Positions 36,715 through 63,612 of a stretch of 64,000 bases of DNA are shown here, one piece after another (position 1 is the first letter of the stretch; every line of letters begins with the position of its first letter). Under the pieces are notes generated by a model. The model was not told where the DNA came from. It ran no database searches and worked only from the letters and a program-made list of their open reading frames with translations. Location of the stretch: the IMG/VR virus record IMGVR_UViG_3300044625_001067, positions 1 through 64,000 of that record; one strand, given 5' to 3'. The position numbers were made by a program, and so were the translations under genes.

Positions 36715-37497
36715 ATGGCACACACTGACACCCTTGGAGACCTTCTTAAGGCTCAAGAACAGGCGGAAGCGGGGCGAAAAGCCGACCCGTTACTCCCCCT
36801 TATGGCACGTATCGACGGTAGCTGCTTCAGTGCTTTCACCAAGGGGCTAGAGCGACCATTTGACGAGCGATTTGTGCAGTTAATGATTGAAACCACCAAG
36901 TTTCTCGTTGACAAGAGTGAAGCCCAACTCGGTTACTGCCAAAGTGATGAAATTACATTGTTCTGGTACCTCGACAAGGAAAATTACTCGAACAGAGAGC
37001 TGTGGTTCGGTGGCAAGTTTCAAAAGCTGACCTCGATCCTGGCCGGCTCCGCATCGTCATACTTTAGTGCGAACATTCCAAAAGTTCTGCATGAAAAGCA
37101 AGGGTGCTATCCCGTGTTTGACGCGAGAGTGTGGAATGTCCCGGACTTAGAACACGCATACCTAAACTTTGTCTGGAGACAACAAGATGCGCAGAAGAAC
37201 TCCGTATCCATGTACGCTCGCCACTTCTTCTCCCACAAGTCTCTTCAGGGCAAAACCTGCCGAGAAATGAAGGGAATGCTTGCCGAAGTCGGAAAGCCAT
37301 GGGAAGAACTCCCTAAGTTTTTCACTCACGGAACGTTCGTGCGAAGGCAGCGCCGTCTTGTCAACCCCGAGGATCTTGTTGGCATTCCCGAGAAGTACCG
37401 CCCGACCAAGGCAATCGTTCGCACTGTTGTTGAAAAGTGGGAGCCTTATGGGGAACTTTCCTTGAGCGACTTTGCTCCTTGGGCTTTTGCTCGGTAA
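36715..37497 (+). CDS. thg1: tRNA(His) guanylyltransferase Thg1-like 3'-5' polymerase
   Basis: 'RIDGSCFSAFT', 'GYCQSDEITL', 'GKFQKLTS', 'FDAR', 'WRQQDAQKNS'. Confidence 0.93.
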   Translation: MAHTDTLGDLLKAQEQAEAGRKADPLLPLMARIDGSCFSAFTKGLERPFDERFVQLMIETTKFLVDKSEAQLGYCQSDEITLFWYLDKENYSNRELWFGGKFQKLTSILAGSASSYFSANIPKVLHEKQGCYPVFDARVWNVPDLEHAYLNFVWRQQDAQKNSVSMYARHFFSHKSLQGKTCREMKGMLAEVGKPWEELPKFFTHGTFVRRQRRLVNPEDLVGIPEKYRPTKAIVRTVVEKWEPYGELSLSDFAPWAFAR

Positions 37498-39008: not shown

Positions 39009-40527
39009 CCCCCGAAAGCCCTAAACCAATGGTAGACCCTGCACAAACTGACTTGTTTACTGCCCCGGTGACTTCAGACTATCAAGTAAAGACCCGCTGG
39101 GGTTTCATGGGGTTCGAGAATCAGTATTGGGATAAGACAAAAATAGGGGAGATAATCACACTTTCCGGACCGCGAGTTGATGTAGATCACAAGAGAAAGA
39201 ATACGTTTAGTGGGTATATTCTTGACCTAGAGTTTCTTACTTGCGAGGATTATAGCAGGGTTCAAGGGGAGTGGACAGCGCCGAAACACATGGATTGCGC
39301 TATTGCAACTATGTGGACTTTTAAGGGAACCGCCGCTAGACGTAAAATGACGACACTACTTAAAAGTGGGCTTGGCATTGGCGTCTCAATTGAGCATGGC
39401 GGTAGAAAGCCTAAAAGAACCATAGGTCCTTGCATAACAGTCACCCATTGCCCCCAAAACCACGATGCATGGGTTATAACTGGAGCCATCGCAGGAAAGT
39501 TCTACAGCAATTTGTATCCAAAGAACAAAACACTTCCGGACTCAGTTTTGAACTGTGCACGGGAGCAATACGAGAAGCACGCTAAACAAGTGTTTCATAC
39601 ACGTGGGAATAGAGATTTCATTCGTGCCCAGCTAGAGTGGGAACCTGGCGGGTCTTACTACAAGTTGTTAAATCCACCCTGTCGAGGGTGAGGTTAGTCG
39701 GGTACGGTCAACCGCACCCCTGAAGGCGGTTACCCGCCTTGCCTTTTCCAGGAAAGTAAGGCATAATTAACGAGAAACTGAACGATGGCCCTCGAACAAT
39801 GAAGTCCACATTTTACGTGAAGAACGAAAAGGTTGAGAGCACAAAAGCTCTCGTTCGCCAACACGCAACTCTAAGATTTCTACAAAACCCTTTACAGGTG
39901 GGTTCCTCAACCGAATTCTGCTTAGAAGGCGATGTCAAAGACTTTAATTCTCTCAACGTTATGCTGGAGGAGCTAAACGTCGAAGAAAAACCAGAACCAG
40001 GGAGCTTTGTTGAACATTTCTGGTCAGTTGTAAGGGGTTCCCCTCGCAATCGCAACCTGTGATTGCCGCAGAAACGGTTAGCCGGCCCCATCCGTTAGGT
40101 CCTTTTTCGGCCTTTGCAAGTAAACACGTCATTCTACTAGCATGGACATTAAGTCACCCTTGACTGACATAGGCTTGCGTAACTTGGCTCACGCACCCCG
40201 TCCCACTGCGGCAAGGGCTCGAAAGCAGATTAGAGAGATTAAAAAAGGGTCCGGCGTGTCTGTGAACGATTGGACGTTTAGAGGTAACATGAAGTACTCT
40301 ATAAACTGCGGAAGTCTAGAAGACACTTCTACAGCCGTATCTTGGCTGAAAGAGAAGAGTATTGCTGTTCTTGAGTGCCCTAAGATACTTGACGCCACAG
40401 CATAGGGCGACGGATGGATTGCTTATTTGGTTAGACCTATAGCGTGAAGGCGGTTTCCTGGCTTGTTTGCTTGGGGGACTCCCTCTGACAACCCTGCGGC
40501 ACTCAAGTCGAATTCTCCCGCCCAACG

Positions 40528-40572
40528 GGGCGGTTACCCGCCCTTTTGCCCCTCGGCGAAACGGGCTATAGT
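40528..40572 (+). promoter_or_regulatory. composite promoter 1 of RNA island
   Basis: GGGCGGTTACCCGCC...TATAGT; no plausible ORF follows. Confidence 0.8.
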
Positions 40573-40600
40573 AAAGGAGTGGTTGAGAGCTTCGCTCCTC

Positions 40601-40785
40601 GCCCCCCTTGCGAAACGAACCTCGAAAAGATCGCGTCTTTGTAAAAGACCTAAGTAGCATACCCCACGAATGTACCTCGTTAGTCGTGCTTGGCGGGTTA
40701 AGCGTAAATGCTTCCGTAAGCTGGGGAAAGGGCTAGGACAAATTGCTACTACAATGACGCAATCTTCGAGACTTCGCCAAGGGGC
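40601..40785 (+). ncRNA. ~185-nt rod-shaped structured RNA of unknown class
   Basis: Nested pairings GCCCC/GGGGC, CTCG/CGAG, AAGAT/ATCTT, GCGTC/GACGC, AGTAGCA/TGCTACT, CCCCA/TGGGG; lies between two promoters. Confidence 0.65.
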
Positions 40786-40787
40786 AA

Positions 40788-40831
40788 GGCGGGAAACCGC
40801 CCTTTACTCCCCTAGCCAAACAAGCTATAGT
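40788..40831 (+). promoter_or_regulatory. composite promoter 2 of RNA island
   Basis: GGCGGGAAACCGCC box, TTTACT, TATAGT 40826-31. Confidence 0.8.
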
Positions 40832-40911
40832 AAAGGGGTGGTTGAGAGAGCTTCGCTCCTCACTCTTTCCCCGGTCTCTCCGGGGGCAACTTGAAAATTT
40901 AAGATTTACAC

Positions 40912-41006
40912 ACACTGGTGAGTACACAGGTTGGGGTACGACCAAGTGCTACCGTGGTCGGGCTTTTACCCTGGTAAGGGGTGAAAGAGTTGGTAGCAGC
41001 CAGTGT
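40912..41006 (+). ncRNA. pseudoknotted multi-stem RNA of unknown class
   Basis: ACACTGG/CCAGTGT closing stem; three internal hairpins; loop TGCTACCG complementary to TGGTAGCA. Confidence 0.55.
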
Positions 41007-41017
41007 TAAGACCAAAA

Positions 41018-41140
41018 GGTTAACGAGAGAGAAAGATCACGGTTCGAGTCCGGATCCAGCAGTAATTGAGCCCGTCAAGGGCATTCCTAGCCATGGTTGC
41101 GGGGTAGTTTAAGTGGCCTAAAAACATTCTCTCTTTTACC
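41018..41140 (+). ncRNA. circularly permuted tRNA-like element 1
   Basis: Order: GAGAGAG, T arm (TTCGAGT), acceptor closed by a linker, TA-GTTT..AAAC D arm, TTCTCTC. Confidence 0.65.
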
Positions 41141-41219
41141 CAGGGGACAATGGCGGTCGCGGCTAACGCCAAGTGCGACTAAGCCACGTCTCATGACCCC
41201 GGTTGATCCCGGGGTATAC

Positions 41220-41293
41220 GCTGCAGTAGGCGAATTGGTTAAGCCGCCAGACTTTCAATCTGGAAATTACGGGTTCAAACCCCGTCTGCAGTA
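41220..41293 (+). tRNA. tRNA-Glu(TTC)
   Basis: GCTGCAG/CTGCAGT; CCAGA-CTTTCAA-TCTGG; ACGGG-TTCAAAC-CCCGT. Confidence 0.9.
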
Positions 41294-41422
41294 TGACCCT
41301 GTGGTTTAACCCATGGGGCACCCTGTGGTTCAACCCGTAGGGCAAATCCACCTTGCCTCTACAGATCGGGAGATAGCATCAAAACGAGTCATCGTGGAAG
41401 AGGGAAGAACTCGGTGGGTTCC

Positions 41423-41548
41423 TGACTAAGAGTGTTAGAGGTTAGCATGTTCCTTTGGGCGAAAACAGTAAGATAGAACGAAGGCCAAGTTCCGTATCTG
41501 TGAGTAGTTTTGACAGAGGAGGTTGAGGTTCGAATCCTCGTTAGTCAC
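41423..41548 (+). ncRNA. tRNA-like RNA with ~50-nt hairpin insertion in the anticodon arm (Gln-like)
   Basis: TGACTAA/TTAGTCA acceptor, D arm, TGAGG-TTCGAAT-CCTCG T arm; extended anticodon arm. Confidence 0.7.
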
Positions 41549-41695
41549 TTGCCCCTCGGCAACAGGGTGCTTCGTTATGCCCTGACCATCAAACATAACG
41601 CCGCTTCTCGTGACGGTAAGATCGAGACTCTGCATCCCTGAGTAACGGGACGCTTAATGTTTGTCGGACAAACATCCTTGGCAACTCAACAGGTT

Positions 41696-41790
41696 AAGAC
41701 GTTGCGAGTCACAGCTGGTAACTGTGACAGGGGACAAGTCTGGTTGACGTTCTGTGCACAAGAACCACGGGTTCGATTCCCGGCGTCTTC
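41696..41790 (+). ncRNA. tRNA-like RNA with extra arm (Cys GCA-like loop)
   Basis: AAGACGT/GCGTCTT; GTCACAG/CTGTGAC hairpin; GTTCT-GTGCACA-AGAAC; CGGG-TTCGATT-CCCG. Confidence 0.6.
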
Positions 41791-41816
41791 GTTGGTTTGC
41801 TTTCGCAAACCCTTAC

Positions 41817-41865
41817 TTCCGCTCTTCTGAGGCCGAAAGCCACGGGGTTCGAATCCCGGCGGAAA
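41817..41865 (+). ncRNA. miniature tRNA-like element (acceptor + T arm, GAAA hairpin)
   Basis: TTCCGC/GCGGAA; GGC-CGAAA-GCC; GGG-TTCGAAT-CCC. Confidence 0.55.
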
Positions 41866-42097
41866 CTGCTCTAAGGGGCAATCACAGGCAAACGCGAGAG
41901 AAATTATGGACAATAGAGCCCGAGGATTTCTCGGATACTCACCCGGCTCCCCTTCGGGTCCCTTCAAGGGATAATTCCTTAGCCTCATAATGTGAGGGTC
42001 CTTTGGGCAACAGTTTCGATTGATCGTAAACCCTCGTTTGGAAAGTGCGGCGCATAACTAAGTCCGTGCGGAAGACAGCAGTGGGTGACCGTCGAAG

Positions 42098-42177
42098 TTG
42101 AAACGGAGCTGGACGCTCGTACTCGTACAGGATGGCCTCTGTGCGAGCAATGCAGGTTCGATCCCTGCCGTTTTAAT
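42098..42177 (+). ncRNA. D-stemless tRNA-like element with long anticodon-position stem
   Basis: TTGAAACG/CGTTTTAA; GCTCGTAC/GTGCGAGC; GCAGG-TTCGATC-CCTGC. Confidence 0.6.
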
Positions 42178-42244
42178 TGCCCAAGATAAACCCACTGGCT
42201 AACCCTGGTACGGTTAATCGCAAGGCAATCCCTCCGGAGGGGAA

Positions 42245-42309
42245 GGTGCGTGGCTTAGTGGTAAAGCTGGTCCGAAAGGCTGAACGCAGGTTCGATTCCT
42301 GCCGCACCA
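42245..42309 (+). ncRNA. tRNA-like element with GAAA tetraloop replacing the anticodon loop
   Basis: GGTGCG/CGCACC; canonical D arm GCTT-AGTGGTA-AAGC; GCAGG-TTCGATT-CCTGC. Confidence 0.7.
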
Positions 42310-42310
42310 C

Positions 42311-42951
42311 TTGGAGTGAGATTCGAGAGTTAGTCGCCTCGATACCCGCAGGGGTATAGCTTAAAGACTCCCTAACAGAGCGCACTCAACCCCAGTTATC
42401 CCACGGCGCTGGTCGCATAGCCGAAGGCACTTCCTGAAGAAGGAACAACTACCGCTGGCGGACCTGGGGCGGTTTGTTGTAAAACAATTGGTATTCAGTA
42501 GCGTCTCGCGAGCAACGCTGATACAACCAGGTCCTGCGACCCTAAGTTAATGCCTCCACGTGGCAGGGTTGGTAACTTTCCCTTTAGGAAAGGCCAAATT
42601 AACAGGGAATTTCTCATCCCGTACGTGAGAAACCTCGACCAAGGTGAGAAGTCAGTCGCTCAGGACACTCTGGGAAAACCTGCCAAGGGTTAATTTGGAC
42701 GGAACTTTCATCCGTTACGTGAAAGCTCTCCTTTGGATTTCGAAGGAATCCGGGGTACTTTGACAGCGATTTGCTCTAAAACCTTCAACAGGTCTGGCAA
42801 TTCGGTGAGTTTGATTCCCGCTTACTCCATTGGATTTTCTCAAATCCGACACCCCCAGAAAAGTTTACTACCTTTGGTAGTGACTATAATGGATGAGTCA
42901 CTGCTCTGCTTGGGCGAAAGCTAAACGGATAACCGGACCGTTCAGCTCCAA
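42311..42951 (+). ncRNA. large ornate structured RNA (~640 nt) with several pseudoknots
   Basis: Terminal stem TTGGAGTGA/TCAGCTCCAA and many long-range complementarities (see findings); no credible ORF. Confidence 0.7.
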
Positions 42952-43208
42952 GTATCAGGTTTCCCCTGGGTTAGCACCCAGGGGTTTAACCCATTCTAGA
43001 AACTGGGATCGTAAGGAAAACGTCGTTAAGTTCCCGTCACTGCCCTGTAAACAGACGTTAACATGGGGTGCTTTCTTGAGGGCTGTCTTGCCGCTGGTAT
43101 CGCTAGATGAAACACTCTTACCGGCCAGTTTGCGAGCCCTGCTGAAAGCTTAGTCCCCTCTGTGCGGCATTGGTTCGCCAAGGCCACGGGATTAGCCTCC
43201 CGTGCTAC

Positions 43209-43284
43209 CCAGGTATCGCCTAACTTGGCTATGGCACCTCTTTCGGGAAGAGGAATAGTCCCGGTTCAAATCCGGGTGCCTGGA
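43209..43284 (+). tRNA. tRNA-Pro(CGG)
   Basis: CCAGGTA/TGCCTGG; CCTCT-TTCGGGA-AGAGG; CCCGG-TTCAAAT-CCGGG. Confidence 0.9.
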
Positions 43285-43355
43285 TGTCCCACTAACGTGG
43301 GAGCAAGGAAACTTGATAACTAAGTAACTATTCTGTCGCAAATGCGATAGCATTT

Positions 43356-43429
43356 GGGGTCTTAGCTCATTTTGGTAGAGCATCTCTGTGGCACGGAGAA
43401 GGTGACCGGTTCGATCCCGGTAGATTCCA
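43356..43429 (+). tRNA. tRNA-Ala(GGC)
   Basis: GGGGTCT/AGATTCC with G3:U70; loop GTGGCAC. Confidence 0.92.
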
Positions 43430-43457
43430 CTTTGTGGGCAACCACAAACTAGAGCAA

Positions 43458-43531
43458 GGGCTTACATGTACCAAGGCTGGCGAGATTGCTTTGCAAGCAA
43501 ACTGTGAAGAGTTCGATTCTCTTTGGGTCCA
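43458..43531 (+). tRNA. tRNA-Ala(TGC), atypical D arm
   Basis: GGGCTTA/TGGGTCC with G3:U70; loop TTTGCAA; AAGAG-TTCGATT-CTCTT. Confidence 0.75.
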
Positions 43532-43552
43532 CTTTCGCTAACGCGAAAACAC

Positions 43553-43668
43553 GAGGGAGAAATGCCGGTTCAAGTCCGGCTCTGGGGGTCCTATAACGTG
43601 GGGTCCTGGGTAGTTTAACTGGTGCCAAGGACTTGTTATCAGTACGCACAAGTCCAAAAACTTCTTTC
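43553..43668 (+). ncRNA. circularly permuted tRNA-like element 2, with hairpin inserted in the D loop
   Basis: GAGGGAG, GCCGG-TTCAAGT-CCGGC, closed acceptor hairpin, TA-GTTT-AACTGGT..[GGACTTGT/ACAAGTCC]..AAAC, TTCTTTC. Confidence 0.7.
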
Positions 43669-43674
43669 CCACAA

Positions 43675-43747
43675 CCCCTCATAGTGTAGCGGCCAAGCAC
43701 GCACCTCTGTCTAAGGTGTATCACGGGTTCAAATCCCGTTGAGGGGG
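43675..43747 (+). tRNA. tRNA-Asp(GTC)
   Basis: CCCCTCA/TGAGGGG; CACCT-CTGTCTA-AGGTG; G73. Confidence 0.92.
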
Positions 43748-43783
43748 TTATTCCGAGGGGTGGCCACCCCAATGACGAATAAA

Positions 43784-43843
43784 GCCAGAGTCCCTGGATA
43801 GGGAAGAGTCGCGACAACGGGGTTCGAATCCCCAGCTCTGGTG
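43784..43843 (+). ncRNA. tRNA-like element lacking an anticodon arm
   Basis: GCCAGAG/CTCTGGT; CCCT-GGAT-AGGG; stub GTCGCGAC; GGGG-TTCGAAT-CCCC. Confidence 0.6.
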
Positions 43844-43860
43844 TTGACGCCCTGGATTGA

Positions 43861-43925
43861 GCGGTTAACCGTTTGCTCCGGGACGGTTTCCCGCCCTTTC
43901 ACCTTTCTGCGAAACGGGTTATAGT
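43861..43925 (+). promoter_or_regulatory. composite promoter 3 of RNA island
   Basis: GCGGTTAACCG and ACGGTTTCCCG boxes, TATAGT 43920-25. Confidence 0.8.
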
Positions 43926-44070
43926 AAAAGGGTGGTTACGGGAGTTTCACTCTCGGCCCCGAACGCTGCGGTTAGGTCTCTGCGTTAGTGAGACTGGCAG
44001 GAGCCCGCCTCCCAGGGCGATGCTTAAGAGCTAGACCCCTTTCTCTGGTTCCCGGAGAAAGATTCCCCGA

Positions 44071-44120
44071 TCCAACTGGTGGTTTGCCTCCGGCAAAGCA
44101 GGTTCGAGTCCTGCCTTGGA
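44071..44120 (+). ncRNA. miniature tRNA-like element
   Basis: TCCAA/TTGGA; CTGGTGG D-loop remnant; TTTGCC/GGCAAA; GCAGG-TTCGAGT-CCTGC. Confidence 0.5.
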
Positions 44121-44213
44121 AATTGGTGCGAAGATCCCTAAGTCTTTATGCCATCTCGTCTCAGAATCCAGCTGTTTGCTTAGGGGCGAACGATCTCTGG
44201 TGAAAAGAGCGAG

Positions 44214-44287
44214 TCTCTCATCGACTAATTGGTAATGTCACCGCCGGGTTACTGGTGGGAATCCAGGTTCGAACCCTGGTGAGAGTG
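44214..44287 (+). tRNA. tRNA-Asn(GTT)-like with 8-nt anticodon loop lacking U33
   Basis: CTCTCA/TGAGAG; CCGCC-GGGTTACT-GGTGG; CCAGG-TTCGAAC-CCTGG; G73. Confidence 0.7.
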
Positions 44288-44316
44288 TTTGCTCTAGTGT
44301 GCTAGAGTGATTAAAA

Positions 44317-44390
44317 GCCCGAGTAACCCAGCGGAAGAGGTGCCTGACTTAAAATCAGGAAGTCGTAGGGTTCGAATCCCACCTCGGGTA
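44317..44390 (+). tRNA. tRNA-Leu(TAA), short variable loop
   Basis: GCCCGAG/CTCGGGT; CCTGA-CTTAAAA-TCAGG; A73. Confidence 0.88.
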
Positions 44391-44441
44391 TTGCTCCTTT
44401 GACCTGGGCCTGGAAGCTCAGTGAATAAGGAACAAACAATC

Positions 44442-44516
44442 GCGTATGTACCCCAACCGGAAGAGGGGCAACACTGAGACTGTTGTTATGTGGAGGTTCG
44501 ACCCCTCTCATGCGCA
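44442..44516 (+). tRNA. tRNA-Leu(GAG), short variable loop
   Basis: GCGTATG/CATGCGC; CAACA-CTGAGAC-TGTTG. Confidence 0.85.
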
Positions 44517-44589
44517 TTTTCCTTTTACCACCCTTCACATAGTGGCGGTAGCTTGGAAAGAACCCTGCGGTTGAAAACCATGGGCAAAA

Positions 44590-44660
44590 TCTCGAATCGA
44601 CTAGTGGTAGGTCGCCTGTCTCTGAAACAGGAAACTTTGGTTCGAATCCAAATTTGAGAA
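44590..44660 (+). tRNA. tRNA-Gln(CTG)
   Basis: TCTCGAA/TTTGAGA; CCTGT-CTCTGAA-ACAGG. Confidence 0.9.
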
Positions 44661-44715
44661 TAACGTTTGGGGCACATCTATGTGCCCTTGCGTACGTTTC
44701 TCGTAGAGAAACCTT

Positions 44716-44804
44716 GGAAGAGTGGTCGAGTGGCTGATGACGATTGCTTGGAAAGCAATTGAGGCGCAAAAGCGTCTCCGGAGGTTCGAATCCTCTCTCT
44801 TCCG
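44716..44804 (+). tRNA. tRNA-Ser(GGA)
   Basis: GGAAGAG/CTCTTCC; loop TTGGAAA; long variable arm; G73. Confidence 0.95.
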
Positions 44805-44862
44805 TCTCACCTGAAAGTAGTACAGCAATAGGGTAAATTATAGGAGTCAATACGTATTTACC

Positions 44863-45564
44863 ATGTCGCTAGGATACTTCTCAGACGAGGTAGTTGAGTG
44901 GCTGTACGAGAACTACTCGGAGTTGGCCGGCAGTATTCTCTACGAATTTACAACGTGCCAGCGACCCAACGGAACTGTATACGGCACGGCAGGAACTTGT
45001 CGAAAAGGTTCCGAGATAGAACAACGGCGCCAGGAGTCAATAACTCACCTGAACACTACCCTGGCTTCCTTAAGGAACAAGCGTGATAACTCACCCGAAG
45101 AGAGCAGGAGCAGGATAAATAGATTGATCACCAAGCTGGAAACGGACCTAAAGGCTATTCAGGGTGTTAAGGGGGCGGAAAAGAAAAGTACGGGGGTCGG
45201 TAGTAGAGCAACGGGTCAGGACCCTATTCGAAATCCCGTGGATCATTCTGCGATGACGCCTGAAAAGACTCAAAATGAGACGTATGGGTTTTACGGTACT
45301 ACTCGAGATGCGAAACCCAAGGAAGTGGAAAAGCGCTGGCGTCACGCATCACGAGCGATTCAGTCTCAAGGGGTGCTTCCGATACACGCACGACGCCTGC
45401 TCGACGCGTCGTGGGGTAGGCATTTGGCAAATGAGCTGGGGAAGACACCAACTGACAAGGTATGGAAGACGGTTCAAGAAATGCTTGAGAAACGTGATTC
45501 ACCAGAACGAAGAGACTTCCTGAAGATTTTGAGGATGGTCACAAGAGAGGACTACGAAGACTGA
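44863..45564 (+). CDS. hypothetical protein with N-terminal 'CQRPNGTVYGTAGTCRKG' motif
   Basis: 233-aa ORF preceded by GGGTAAA motif; last plus-strand gene before the strand switch. Confidence 0.7.
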   Translation: MSLGYFSDEVVEWLYENYSELAGSILYEFTTCQRPNGTVYGTAGTCRKGSEIEQRRQESITHLNTTLASLRNKRDNSPEESRSRINRLITKLETDLKAIQGVKGAEKKSTGVGSRATGQDPIRNPVDHSAMTPEKTQNETYGFYGTTRDAKPKEVEKRWRHASRAIQSQGVLPIHARRLLDASWGRHLANELGKTPTDKVWKTVQEMLEKRDSPERRDFLKILRMVTREDYED

Positions 45565-59296: not shown

Positions 59297-59839
59297 TTAA
59301 CTTGCGGGCTTTTCCGGCGAAGAGCCAAGTTCCTGGGATGCGGCTAGATAGTCTTCGATGGCTGCATGAAAGTTGGATTCAAATTCAGCTATCGTTTCGC
59401 CGTGAAACGAGATAATGTCGTCGATGTCTAGGACACGACCAACAATAATCTTGTCTTCAGTATCGAAGACCATACTGGCTGTGTAGTCTTTGTAGGCCAT
59501 GGAATTGATCATGGCTTTCCGCACCCATGTAGAAGAATACGGTTCAGTAAGCATGTACAAACCTTCCTCAAACTTCCCAGTAGAGAGAATGATTTGGAGG
59601 GCTGTTTGAGTTTGTTCGTGAAGTTGCCTGTACTCCTCTTCCTGTGACTCGGTCAATTCTTCTAGGTCTTCTCCAGTCAGAATTTCGTGTATGTCTCCGA
59701 TAACCCAACTGTTACCATACGGTCTTTTCGGGTCTATTTCCGGAGCACCGAATTCACAGTTTCTCCACCCAACGTGCATTCTTCTCAGCAGTTTCAGGTG
59801 GTTTTGAGTTAGGAGAAAGAAGGTCTTGCTGTTAGTCAT
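59297..59839 (-). CDS. phage domain fused to truncated HicB antitoxin domain
   Basis: C-terminal 'YKDYTASMVFDTEDKIIVGRVLDIDDIISFHGETIAEFESNFHAAIEDYL...PEKPAS*' is HicB N-domain-like and ends before the DNA-binding domain. Confidence 0.75.
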   Translation of the reverse strand: MTNSKTFFLLTQNHLKLLRRMHVGWRNCEFGAPEIDPKRPYGNSWVIGDIHEILTGEDLEELTESQEEEYRQLHEQTQTALQIILSTGKFEEGLYMLTEPYSSTWVRKAMINSMAYKDYTASMVFDTEDKIIVGRVLDIDDIISFHGETIAEFESNFHAAIEDYLAASQELGSSPEKPAS

Positions 59840-59853
59840 AACAAAAATGGGAA

Positions 59854-59965
59854 TGGGACCGGCAGGACTCGAACCTGCAACCGCGCCTTTAAAAGAGGTA
59901 ATTTAATTGCTGATGTATCTTTGTCAAGATAACTTTTCGTGCTCTACCAGTTGAGCTACGGTCCC
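59854..59965 (-). tRNA. tRNA-Lys(TTT) with 39-nt insertion in the anticodon stem
   Basis: GGGACCG/CGGTCCC; CG[39 nt]CCT-CTTTTAA-AGGCG; GCAGG-TTCGAGT-CCTGC. Confidence 0.8.
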
Positions 59966-60746: not shown

Positions 60747-60764
60747 TGTTTGCCGAAGGCAAAG

Positions 60765-60886
60765 TCGAAGAGGCAAGATTCGAACTTGCGTATGGCGGTT
60801 CCTTTTGCGTATTGGGTAATTGCTGAATTACCTAAGCTAGGTAATCTTTTTGCATTACCACTGCCTAACCACTTGGCTACTCTTCG
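60765..60886 (-). ncRNA. tRNA scaffold whose anticodon loop is replaced by an AAAAAG-hairpin-TCAGCAATT module
   Basis: CGAAGAG/CTCTTCG; GCC-AAGTGGTTA-GGC; GTGGT/ACCGC; GCAAG-TTCGAAT-CTTGC. Confidence 0.8.
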
Positions 60887-61759: not shown

Positions 61760-62137
61760 TCACTTGGTTGACCTTGCATACAAATTCGACAGTAGCAGAA
61801 GCAGAATGAGTGACAAAATGGACACAGAGCCTAAGATTACGATTGGGCTAAACACTGAGAGCCATGGCCAGGTTATTTGCCCCGTTAATTTCAACCCGAG
61901 GAGGAGACCCTGGGCTGTCATTAACGAAACTGCGAGATTCTCAAACATTAGTTATTTCTCATGCGAAAGTAGTTGAAGAATCATCCAAAGGGCTCCCAAC
62001 CCAAGTAGAAAAATTGGCACAAGGGTTGGTGAAAGCACTGTGAGCCAGGGCCAGGAAACCTGACCCGTTACTTTCATAGTCATGAATACGGTTTGCAGAA
62101 CGATGCAGAGGGCACCCGGCAATTTGATCCAGATCAT
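61760..62137 (-). CDS. two tandem paralogous small membrane proteins (61952-62137 and 61760-61948)
   Basis: 'KVTGQVSWPWLTVLSP' vs 'KLTGQITWPWLSVFSP'; first overlaps the DUF2828 stop. Confidence 0.7.
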
Positions 62138-63612
62138 GCTCCTTCAGCAAATACGGCACCGACAGCGTCGTACCTTTCAGTGTAAACAGCGTCACGCATA
62201 GCCCCTACAGGCGTAATTACCCCGCCAGTAAGCACAGCTTTCAGGATTGAAGGGCTGCACCCGGAGACCAGGCAAGTTCCCGTGTCGTGCATTTTCATAG
62301 GTACGTTGCCGCTAGAGTTAACATTCCAGAAGACAAGTTCCGGCAAGGAATACCCAGCTTGAGCGTACTTGATTCGCACCGCCTCAAAGTTTGTCACTGA
62401 GTTGTTTCTGCAGCAGGAATCAAACTGCATGTCTGAGACAATGATGAGCTTGCGCGGCATTTCCCCCTCAGGAATATGGTTCATCGTGGCGGTAGCCAAC
62501 ACAAGATTGAAGACTGCTTGCAGGTCTGTATTCGCACCCCAGTCGGCCCGGCTAAGGTTACGAACACGCTCAGCAACGTTTCTCCCTGTAACCGACTGCA
62601 ACTGCGGTCTTCCGGAGAAGGTTAGGAACTTATCCTTCCATGCCCCGGTGTTACGCTCAGCGATGTACATCGCCAGCGAGATTGAAACCGCCATGGGCAT
62701 GCCGCCGTTATTTCCCATTGATCCTGAGACGTCGGCAATTACCAGGCCGTTCAGCTGCTCTCCTTCCATGTAGTTGGGTAGAGCCTCCCACATTAAGTTT
62801 AGAGTCTGATCGCTCCTCTCACCCCCGTAAAGGTACTTGTGCACGATCTCGTAAGGGTAGATCGTACCGGCATTGATTTTTGCCTCACCTTTCTCTACCG
62901 AGTCAAGGTAGGATTGGTAGCGGTCGCCGTCGCGCTTGGCGAAAGCTTTACGATACATGAAGCCTGCCCGAGAAGGCAACTTGCTATAGTCAATGCTTTC
63001 CCACTCACGGGCACACATTGGCTGCTCAACAATCTTGACTTGTGACCTGAGGGCAGTCAGTGCCTTGCGGTACTGCCTCTCGGTCCAACCCATTGCTTCG
63101 GCAATTTTTCGGCCAATCCTCTTAGAGTCCTGGCTGGAAGCGTTAATGGAAGGCAGCCACTTTGCCAGAAGTGAAACTGACTTTCCAACTTCCGTATTTA
63201 GGTCGGCGTTCAGTTGTGCCTTAATTGCTTCGAGTGCGATGCCCCAAACTAAGGTACCGTCAAGGGCTACCACATCATCCCAGCGACCGTACTGTGGAAT
63301 CAGGCTAACTAGCCTGGCACCAATTGCAGCATCATTTCGAACCAGCTCCTTGAAAACTTCTCGAAAGATCTTTCGCTCTCCCTGGCCCCCACGAATGTCG
63401 CGTGCCCAAAACAAGATTCGAGTTGCGGTCTCAGGGTCTTCTGCGTAGGCAAGGTTGAACAGTCGAGTTGCTTCGCTGATTTTGTCACGGCAAGCTGCAA
63501 TCTTTCCAAAAAGGTCCAGGCACTTAGACTCGGTGGACTTGTATGCCTTTGCACCGTTTGCAGTGGTAGTTTGGTTAAACTCGTTTTCGAGTGCGTTTAA
63601 AAAGGTTGTCAT
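62134..63612 (-). CDS. DUF2828 family protein (TROVE/Ro60-like helical domain + vWA)
   Basis: 'TANGA...ST..CLDLF', 'RDIRGGQGER', 'YGRWDD', 'AKWLPS', MIDAS 'DVSGSM', 'SDMQFD', 'VFWNV', 'VSGCSP'. Confidence 0.88.
   Translation of the reverse strand: MTTFLNALENEFNQTTTANGAKAYKSTESKCLDLFGKIAACRDKISEATRLFNLAYAEDPETATRILFWARDIRGGQGERKIFREVFKELVRNDAAIGARLVSLIPQYGRWDDVVALDGTLVWGIALEAIKAQLNADLNTEVGKSVSLLAKWLPSINASSQDSKRIGRKIAEAMGWTERQYRKALTALRSQVKIVEQPMCAREWESIDYSKLPSRAGFMYRKAFAKRDGDRYQSYLDSVEKGEAKINAGTIYPYEIVHKYLYGGERSDQTLNLMWEALPNYMEGEQLNGLVIADVSGSMGNNGGMPMAVSISLAMYIAERNTGAWKDKFLTFSGRPQLQSVTGRNVAERVRNLSRADWGANTDLQAVFNLVLATATMNHIPEGEMPRKLIIVSDMQFDSCCRNNSVTNFEAVRIKYAQAGYSLPELVFWNVNSSGNVPMKMHDTGTCLVSGCSPSILKAVLTGGVITPVGAMRDAVYTERYDAVGAVFAEGA

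Follow-up and report, generated by a model that had tools for sequence, protein, structure and literature searches.

The gene at positions 41423–41548 (+) of the DNA analysed here is, on comparison with its relatives, a real, conserved, single-copy RNA gene. It is shaped like a tRNA, with a 58-nt insert (41457–41514) in place of the anticodon loop. The reading that we favour, and consider rather likely, is that it encodes a stand-alone, non-decoding RNA built on a tRNA scaffold, a member of a hitherto undescribed family that occurs in uncultivated large phages. The stretch analysed (the window) comprises the first 64 kb of G000, a phage record of 277 kb in IMG/VR that is 98% complete.

ARAGORN with its default settings makes no call at 41423–41548. 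When introns are allowed, it returns exactly this interval, with an insert of 53 nt. Between the two strands of the anticodon stem there are 58 nt instead of a 7-nt loop. The parts of the element, together with a promoter-like site upstream of it, are as follows.

40803–40831 (+), promoter-like site TTTACT-17-TATAGT from a consensus scan, within a repeated cassette upstream of the element
41423–41429 (+), 5' strand of the acceptor stem, TGACTAA, pairing with 41541–41547 over a perfect 7 bp; compensatory double changes in 7/7 pairs among 15 relatives
41430–41431 (+), positions 8–9, GA; U8 is missing
41432–41448 (+), D arm as drawn by ARAGORN: weak stem GTGT/GCAT (G.U, U-A, G-C, U.G) and a 9-nt loop with GG
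41451–41456 (+), 5' strand of the anticodon-stem equivalent, TCCTTT, pairing with 41515–41520; six pairs, 100% paired, two with compensatory changes
41457–41514 (+), conserved insert of 58 nt replacing the anticodon loop; pairwise identity 86.5%, against 63.3% for the tRNA body
41464–41468 (+), insert helix A-A-C-A-G, pairing with C-T-G-T-G at 41498–41502 in the RNAalifold consensus
41469–41475 (+), TAAGATA, 5' side of a 7x5 internal loop whose 3' side is CGTAT at 41493–41497
41476–41492 (+), apical hairpin with a 4-bp stem GAAC/GTTC and a 9-nt loop GAAGGCCAA containing the self-complementary GGCC
41503–41514 (+), 3' side of the insert base, AGTAGTTTT, and the variable joiner GAC; contains TTTTGAC
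41515–41520 (+), 3' strand of the anticodon-stem equivalent, pairing with 41451–41456
41524–41540 (+), T arm with stem TGAGG/CCTCG and loop TTCGAAT; 100% paired, compensatory changes in 3/5 pairs
41541–41548 (+), 3' strand of the acceptor stem, TTAGTCA, and discriminator C; CCA is not encoded

Several of these features had been picked out in an earlier reading of the letters alone (the sequence-only reading), and they are indeed present. A U1-A72 pair (T41423–A41547) closes the perfect 7-bp stem 41423–41429/41541–41547, and TTTTGAC lies at 41508–41514, preceded by about 50 extra nucleotides. Within these are GCG-AAAAC at 41459–41466, the pairing strands AGATAGAAC and GTTC..TATCT at 41471–41479 and 41489–41499, and G-TGAGTAGTT at 41500–41509.

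U8 is near-universal in tRNAs. It occurs in 0/15 members of the family, in which positions 8–9 are GA, AA, AG or GG. The variable loop is just 2–3 nt long. Three pairs of the D-arm stem are kept in 15/15 members. The window copy keeps the elbow consensus, which is lost in two other members (L145 and L217), where the GG of the D loop has become AG and the T loop has become TGCAAGT.

Relatives were sought by scanning sequence collections with the insert core as an exact pattern. This gave 15 distinct full members, together with one distant lineage (L159), from viral and metagenome contigs. There are more than 15 sequence variants, with one copy per genome. In the viral, metagenome and genome scans, every true match to the core motif lies within a tRNA-like scaffold, and the element is single-copy in each of three complete genomes (G000, G002 and G006). 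Both observations, the single copy and the confinement of the core motif to such scaffolds, support an insert that is not mobile. In G002 (complete, 279 kb) identity is 88% over the orthologue but falls to 70% in the tRNA region upstream, and downstream the flanks cannot be aligned.

An exact-motif scan of one genome per species across 185,579 prokaryote species returned chance matches only, blastn against 50,697 GenBank phage records gave no match to the element, and the element matches no Rfam family. Nor was it found in Synechococcus phage B3, the nearest cultured carrier of the DUF2828 protein discussed below.

The fold of the element as a single sequence is unremarkable (z = −1.76), and the case for a conserved structure therefore rests on comparative evidence. 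A covariance model built for the family (R1) scores its members at 105–147 bits, as against 15–34 bits for plain tRNAs. Covariation was counted on a realignment of the 15 sequences guided by the covariance model. In this alignment, which is fitted to the model, 98% of pair cells hold standard pairs, and double (compensatory) changes are found in 16/34 pairs. The observed values were reached by 0–1 of 500 shuffles, and slid controls fall to about 40% paired. By helix, compensatory changes affect 7/7 pairs of the acceptor stem, 3/5 of the T stem, 2/6 of the anticodon stem and 3/4 of the apical insert helix. The pair T41451–A41520, for instance, is C-G in the G002 orthologue. An analysis of the raw MAFFT alignment by RNAalifold was set aside, as it misaligned the tRNA stems and recovered just the two insert helices.

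It is striking that the insert is far more conserved than the tRNA body around it, with a mean pairwise identity of 86.5% as against 63.3%; the tRNA bodies of the relatives are only 38–63% identical. The sequence-only reading had described a tRNA-shaped gene with a long structured insertion in its anticodon arm, and this description is borne out by the 15 homologues and by covariation far beyond chance. It is for this reason that the product may be called a scaffold RNA, in a loose sense.

In one subgroup (L149, L156, L158, L184, L200, L213, L269, L146 and L151), an 8–12-bp helix immediately beyond the acceptor stem joins the 5' leader to the 3' trailer, and it too shows compensatory changes. 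This could mean that the mature RNA exceeds 126 nt, or that its precursor has an unusual route of maturation.

The RNAalifold consensus for the arm consists, in order, of the anticodon stem, a GGGC/GUUU pairing, a GAA/AGUA internal loop, a 5-bp helix (41464–41468/41498–41502), the 7x5 internal loop, the covarying 4-bp helix and the 9-nt loop. Within the 5-bp helix, the pair 41465:41501 is A-U, G-C or G.U in different members, and in L156 each strand has gained one base, the two insertions being matched. The 7x5 loop (UAAGAUA/CGUAY) does not vary among the members, even in the distant L159 lineage, except at one R and one Y position. The stem above it shows compensatory changes in 3/4 of its pairs. 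At the base of the arm, three mutually exclusive pairings fit the 15 sequences about equally, namely that of RNAalifold, a GC-GAAA-GC mini-hairpin and an AAAA:UUUU pairing. The sequence-only reading had proposed that AAAAC pairs with the GTTTT of the would-be anticodon loop. This is possible, 13–15 of the 15 sequences being compatible with it, but two exclusive alternatives fit equally well, and RNAalifold favours another.

The centre of the apical loop is GGCC, GUAC, GGCU or CGCG according to lineage, and is self-complementary in every case. This suggests loop-loop dimerisation, although weakly, because there have been few independent changes in the apical loop; on these few independent loop variants, our own rough estimate is a p of a few percent.

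Other readings of the conserved loops were tried and rejected. The UAAG..UAU of the 7x5 loop presumably resembles the 11-nt receptor of GAAA tetraloops. This sequence does not vary, whereas the supposed tetraloop is GAAA, AAAA, GACA or AAAC, and there is therefore no consistent tetraloop/receptor pair. K-turn and hammerhead readings fail because the consensus nucleotides do not fit, and neither is matched in Rfam. Mimicry of helix 24 of 16S rRNA (the 790 loop) by the insert base was also considered; the 5' half aligns with 16S positions 773–794 (p about 0.04 against shuffles), but the 3' half does not. Finally, a target in trans was sought for the apical loop. Its complement, TTGGCCTTC, occurs five times in the genome as against about two expected, with no pattern.

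In the genome there are 49 canonical tRNA genes, together with a tmRNA-like gene. Among the tRNAs are Gln(UUG) at 137735–137806, Gln(CUG) at 44590–44660, and Ser(UGA). Members of the family are found co-oriented inside tRNA arrays in 13/14 loci, and there are canonical tRNA-Gln(UUG) genes in the same arrays. In the window, a 59-nt cassette occurs three times (40526–40584, 40785–40843 and 43879–43937, all +), each copy being a GC-rich hairpin followed by TTTACT/TTCACC-16/17-TATAGT. By its sequence, the cassette probably marks transcription-unit boundaries in the tRNA array, and the predicted promoter at 40803–40831 is the probable start of the array transcript that contains the element.

A gene for a Thg1-like tRNA-His guanylyltransferase, a 3'-5' polymerase, lies at 36715–37497 (+; phrog_4717, E 2e-67). 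It is found about 550 nt upstream of the orthologue in G002 and is present in G007, and it is absent from the complete genome G006. No protein-coding gene is conserved beside the element across both subgroups, and the Thg1-like gene is syntenic in the window subgroup only.

The array of the window holds further non-canonical or oversized tRNA-like elements at 41649–41791, 41786–41868 and 42139–42310 (all +), which are missed by default finders and have good T arms of the GGTTCGA type. Extra T-arm motifs are found at 41030–41053, 42147–42179, 44093–44125 and 44258–44290. Tandem 24-nt hairpin units, ACCCTGTGGTTYAACCCRTRGGGC, directly follow tRNA-Glu at 41296–41343 (+), with similar units at 42976–42999 and 44562–44585; these may be processing or spacer hairpins. 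Also in the array, 42539–42604 (+) weakly matches the HDV-like ribozyme family RF02682, at 25.6 bits (E 0.09) where the gathering threshold is 44. This may reflect a divergent HDV-like or theta-type ribozyme that acts in tRNA processing, or it may be chance. Outside the window, the main tRNA cluster of G000 includes two oversized tRNA-shaped genes at 137882–138000 (−) and 138412–138570 (−). In one of them the anticodon arm bears a branched, three-way insert; in the other the anticodon hairpin appears intact, and the variable region is occupied by an arm of about 85 nt.

The sequence-only reading had taken the element for a Gln-like tRNA, and this identification does not hold. UUG is readable in just 3/15 members. 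The U1-A72 pair is found in 7/15, these being the window subgroup together with L146 and L151, and the remainder have C-G or G-C. ARAGORN assigns the relatives to Ser, Pro, Gly, Thr or Leu, and the implied anticodon differs in nearly every member (others being AAG, GGU, AGG and AGA). In the very close relative L206, a single extra G turns UUG into UGG while the acceptor stem is unchanged. The stretch AGTAGTTT is conserved, and the joiner 3' of it varies among relatives in length (4–6 nt) as well as in sequence, so that TTTTGAC is not a fixed 7-nt anticodon loop. When the insert is removed in silico, the pseudo-spliced body is no nearer to the tRNA-Gln of the phage than to other tRNAs, and the same genomes and arrays contain canonical genes for tRNA-Gln(UUG). 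The Rfam tRNA model RF00005 gives no match over 41423–41548, either at its gathering threshold (29 bits) or at E<=10; its scores for the copies at 59.9 and 60.8 kb, which also bear inserts, are 48.5 and 41.9 bits. Since a nearly invariant arm of 58 bases stands where its anticodon loop would be, the element is not, on this sequence evidence, a glutamine tRNA.

It could be argued that the element is nevertheless a true tRNA gene, for glutamine or another amino acid, interrupted by a conserved intron that a host or phage activity as yet unknown removes. Such genes have a precedent in the tRNA arrays of Lak megaphages, which contain oversized tRNA genes whose inserts in the anticodon region are strikingly conserved between phages, by a mechanism that is unknown (Devoto et al., 2019; PMC6784885). 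The element resembles these 'enigmatic' introns in being an overlong tRNA-shaped gene in the array of a huge phage, with a conserved insert in the anticodon region. It is also consistent with an intron that ARAGORN, when allowed introns, calls a tRNA in every member, that the 3' joiner is often UU-NNN-AC, resembling positions 32–38 of an anticodon loop, and that the phage invests in tRNA repair through its Thg1-like gene (36715–37497).

We nonetheless regard an intron of the Lak type as unlikely. The Lak genes have a stable assigned anticodon and insert-free alleles. Here, in contrast, the anticodon is unconserved, shifting between close relatives that share an acceptor stem (UUG as against UGG, by 1 nt), and no insert-free allele of exons of the L146 type was found in viral contigs by exact pattern. 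The sequence of the insert is also different, and its core motif does not appear in the text form of the Lak supplementary intron tables. The body is a poor one for a decoding tRNA, with U8 in 0/15 members, a variable loop of 2–3 nt, the elbow consensus lost in two members and no RF00005 match at E<=10, and canonical tRNAs for the candidate anticodons are already in the genome. The insert is more conserved than its supposed exons.

Known routes of removal fare no better. Archaeal and eukaryal bulge-helix-bulge introns and bacterial group I introns of tRNAs also place extra sequence in the anticodon arm. However, neither RtcB (PF01139) nor a splicing endonuclease (PF01974) is encoded in the phage genomes G000, G002 and G006, in a search in which the controls were detected. 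Two 3-nt bulges 4 bp apart were seen in none of the consensus and MFE folds inspected. A group I intron would need more than the 53–58 nt of the insert. Over 40800–45200, Rfam gives no intron or ribozyme family that overlaps the element at E<=10, the sole overlap being a chance-level sRNA (E = 1.3). In the element it is the sequence that is conserved, and not just the structure of the boundaries. With no RtcB or endonuclease, no match to an intron or ribozyme and no insert-free allele, splicing would be possible only through an unknown activity. That such an activity does remove the 58-nt arm as a true intervening sequence, making it a third kind of tRNA intron, in bacterial viruses, seems less likely still. 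If it were true, a structured intron with a conserved sequence could be a functional RNA once released.

The same genome contains other tRNA-like genes with an insert in the anticodon arm, and the sequence-only reading had proposed that the element is a diverged third member of that family. These genes lie beside a DUF2828/DUF7788 protein encoded at 62134–63612 (−) and assigned to PHROG 850, 'RNA-binding protein'. Its nearest cultured relatives are in the 244-kb Synechococcus phages B3 and B23 (63% identity), which makes a cyanobacterial host plausible for the present phage. In a Foldseek search of the PDB with an AlphaFold model of the protein (pLDDT 68), the top 12 among the matches listed (ranks 1–13) are Ro60/TROVE proteins, with E 5e-8 to 6e-4, including a phage Ro60. 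The protein thus models as a Ro60-like TROVE+vWA fold. Because of this resemblance, the two RNAs linked to it in the window, at 59854–59965 (−) and 60764–60886 (−), are probably Y-RNA-like partners with open acceptor ends. Such partners of Ro60-type proteins are a known kind (PMC4201824; PMC7824862).

All 15 close loci (L122–L136; DUF2828 protein 75–99% identical) carry 1–4 insert-bearing tRNA-like genes about 0.2–2.5 kb downstream, and the distant DUF2828 homologue loci L137 and L138 carry none. The linked genes have at least four body types, with a common hairpin (UAYCUU/AAGRUA) and an invariant CAGCAA.

Some further observations concern this locus. The 59.9-kb copy contains a pseudo anticodon hairpin CCT-CTTTTAA-AGG at 59886–59898, the loop of which is not conserved in orthologues. 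Directly downstream of the linked RNAs, at 59297–59839 (−), is a 180-aa ORF, the C-terminal 70 residues of which match a HicB-like antitoxin (phrog_9151, E 1e-21). In Synechococcus phage B3 (L341, MN695334.1 221705–221814), a 110-nt gene annotated as 'tRNA-Pseudo-GCA', with a weak match to the insert module (20.9 bits) lies 390 nt downstream of the DUF2828 homologue. Phage B3 is a cultured cyanophage, in which the DUF2828-RNA pair is experimentally tractable.

If the element were a diverged third member of this family, it would be a further Y-RNA-like partner of the phage Ro60-like protein, a reading that we consider improbable. The general design is the same, with a tRNA body in which an A-rich stretch, a hairpin and xxAGxAxUU (6/9 identity) take the place of the anticodon arm. 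Moreover, the Ro60-like protein is encoded in the same genome, and Ro60 proteins bind more than one Y RNA (PMC4201824). The match to AAAAG-hairpin-TCAGCAATT on which the proposal was based is real in so far as TGAGTAGTT and TCAGCAATT are identical at 6/9 positions, but this is not beyond chance, and a regular expression loosened enough to admit the element also matches three unrelated places in the 277-kb genome. A strict scan of viral contigs for AAAAG-N12-28-TCAGCAATT was discarded, as it gave 120 chance matches, none of them in a tRNA-like context.

The comparison by covariance model is clearer. A model of the module (R2, 17 sequences), run over the whole window with filters off, scores the known copies at 54.1 and 46.8 bits and finds nothing at 41423–41548 at E<=10. 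The sequence-only reading had suggested scoring the element in this way against the module of the copies at 59.9–63.7 kb; the score is non-significant, and it counts against the relationship proposed there. Conversely, R1 gives the DUF2828-linked copies 15–25 bits, the level of plain tRNAs, as against 105–147 for true relatives. The signature of the module, a hairpin UAYCUN/NAGRUA followed by CAGCAA, is invariant or nearly so in 20/20 sequences of the module family. The element has GAGTAG where the module has CAGCAA, and its hairpin differs in both sequence and architecture.

There is no linkage either. A distance of 20 kb in G000, and of 65 kb in G002, separates the element from the DUF2828 gene, whereas the true partners lie about 0.2–2.5 kb downstream of it in 15/15 close loci. 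The complete genome G006 (195 kb) has the element and lacks DUF2828, DUF7788, TROVE and the module altogether. The module thus tracks DUF2828, being found in G000 and G002 and not in G006, and the element is present once in all three. As far as these comparisons go, the element is neither homologous nor genetically linked to the tRNA-like partners of the Ro60-like protein at 59.9–60.9 kb, and the proposed third member is not one.

It is nonetheless useful to compare the two. The DUF2828-linked RNAs and the YrlA Y RNAs (Chen et al., 2014; PMC4201824) resemble the element as phage-encoded, non-decoding tRNA mimics, in which a tRNA-like acceptor/T/D core carries a conserved protein-binding helix, this last being putative for the element. 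They differ from it in adjoining a gene of the Ro60/TROVE type and carrying the binding module of its product. The element is unlinked and occurs also in a phage with no Ro60-like gene, and there is no TROVE or DUF2828 gene near it, as would be looked for with a Y RNA of the YrlA type. In addition, the two ends of a YrlA RNA lie in its Ro-binding stem and its acceptor-like stem is closed, whereas the element ends in an open 7-bp acceptor stem and has a different conserved arm.

That the element is a decaying, functionless tRNA pseudogene with junk acquired in its anticodon loop is hardly credible: default tRNA scanners and Rfam do miss it, and several other odd tRNA-like remnants lie in the same array, but four helices are preserved by compensatory changes among relatives with just 38–63% identity in their bodies, and the insert is nearly invariant, single-copy and syntenic within the arrays of many phage lineages.

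On the basis of these observations, we return to the non-decoding RNA on a tRNA scaffold, and propose how it might be made and used. The element would be co-transcribed with the tRNA array and then excised by the host enzymes that process tRNA ends. We propose excision by these enzymes because the acceptor/T-arm minihelix and the elbow are kept. The tRNA body would act as a scaffold for processing and stability, and might also provide tRNA-binding proteins with a handle. The working part would be the conserved arm, offering a specific site to a protein, whether a host or a phage factor, and so acting as a decoy or adaptor. It may act as a dimer, through loop-loop pairing of the apical loop. 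The arm is probably a protein-binding or dimerising module.

The architecture is identical to that of the engineered tRNA scaffold attributed to Ponchon and Dardel in 2007, in which a structured RNA reportedly replaces the anticodon loop for stable expression; both retain the acceptor, D and T arms and have a module attached to the anticodon stem, in the engineered case so that the cell will process and stabilise it as it would a tRNA. The engineered scaffold is a laboratory design, whereas the element is natural, and conserved in phages. We know of no description of a conserved counterpart, with a module of its own, that occurs naturally in phages.

The element would be the natural equivalent of the laboratory tRNA scaffold, and the module that it presents is structured and nearly invariant. 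The 'pseudo' or oversized tRNA genes of large phages are usually ignored or called introns, and at least one of them is, by these comparisons, a strongly constrained RNA in itself. The family is clean enough to be modelled, searched for and tested. The analysis also tells apart two look-alikes within one genome, the Y-RNA-like partners of a Ro60-like protein and a tRNA-shaped RNA that is independent of them. Should the arm bind a factor of the host or the phage, such as a tRNA-targeting defence nuclease or a repair enzyme, the element would represent a new type of phage riboregulator or decoy.
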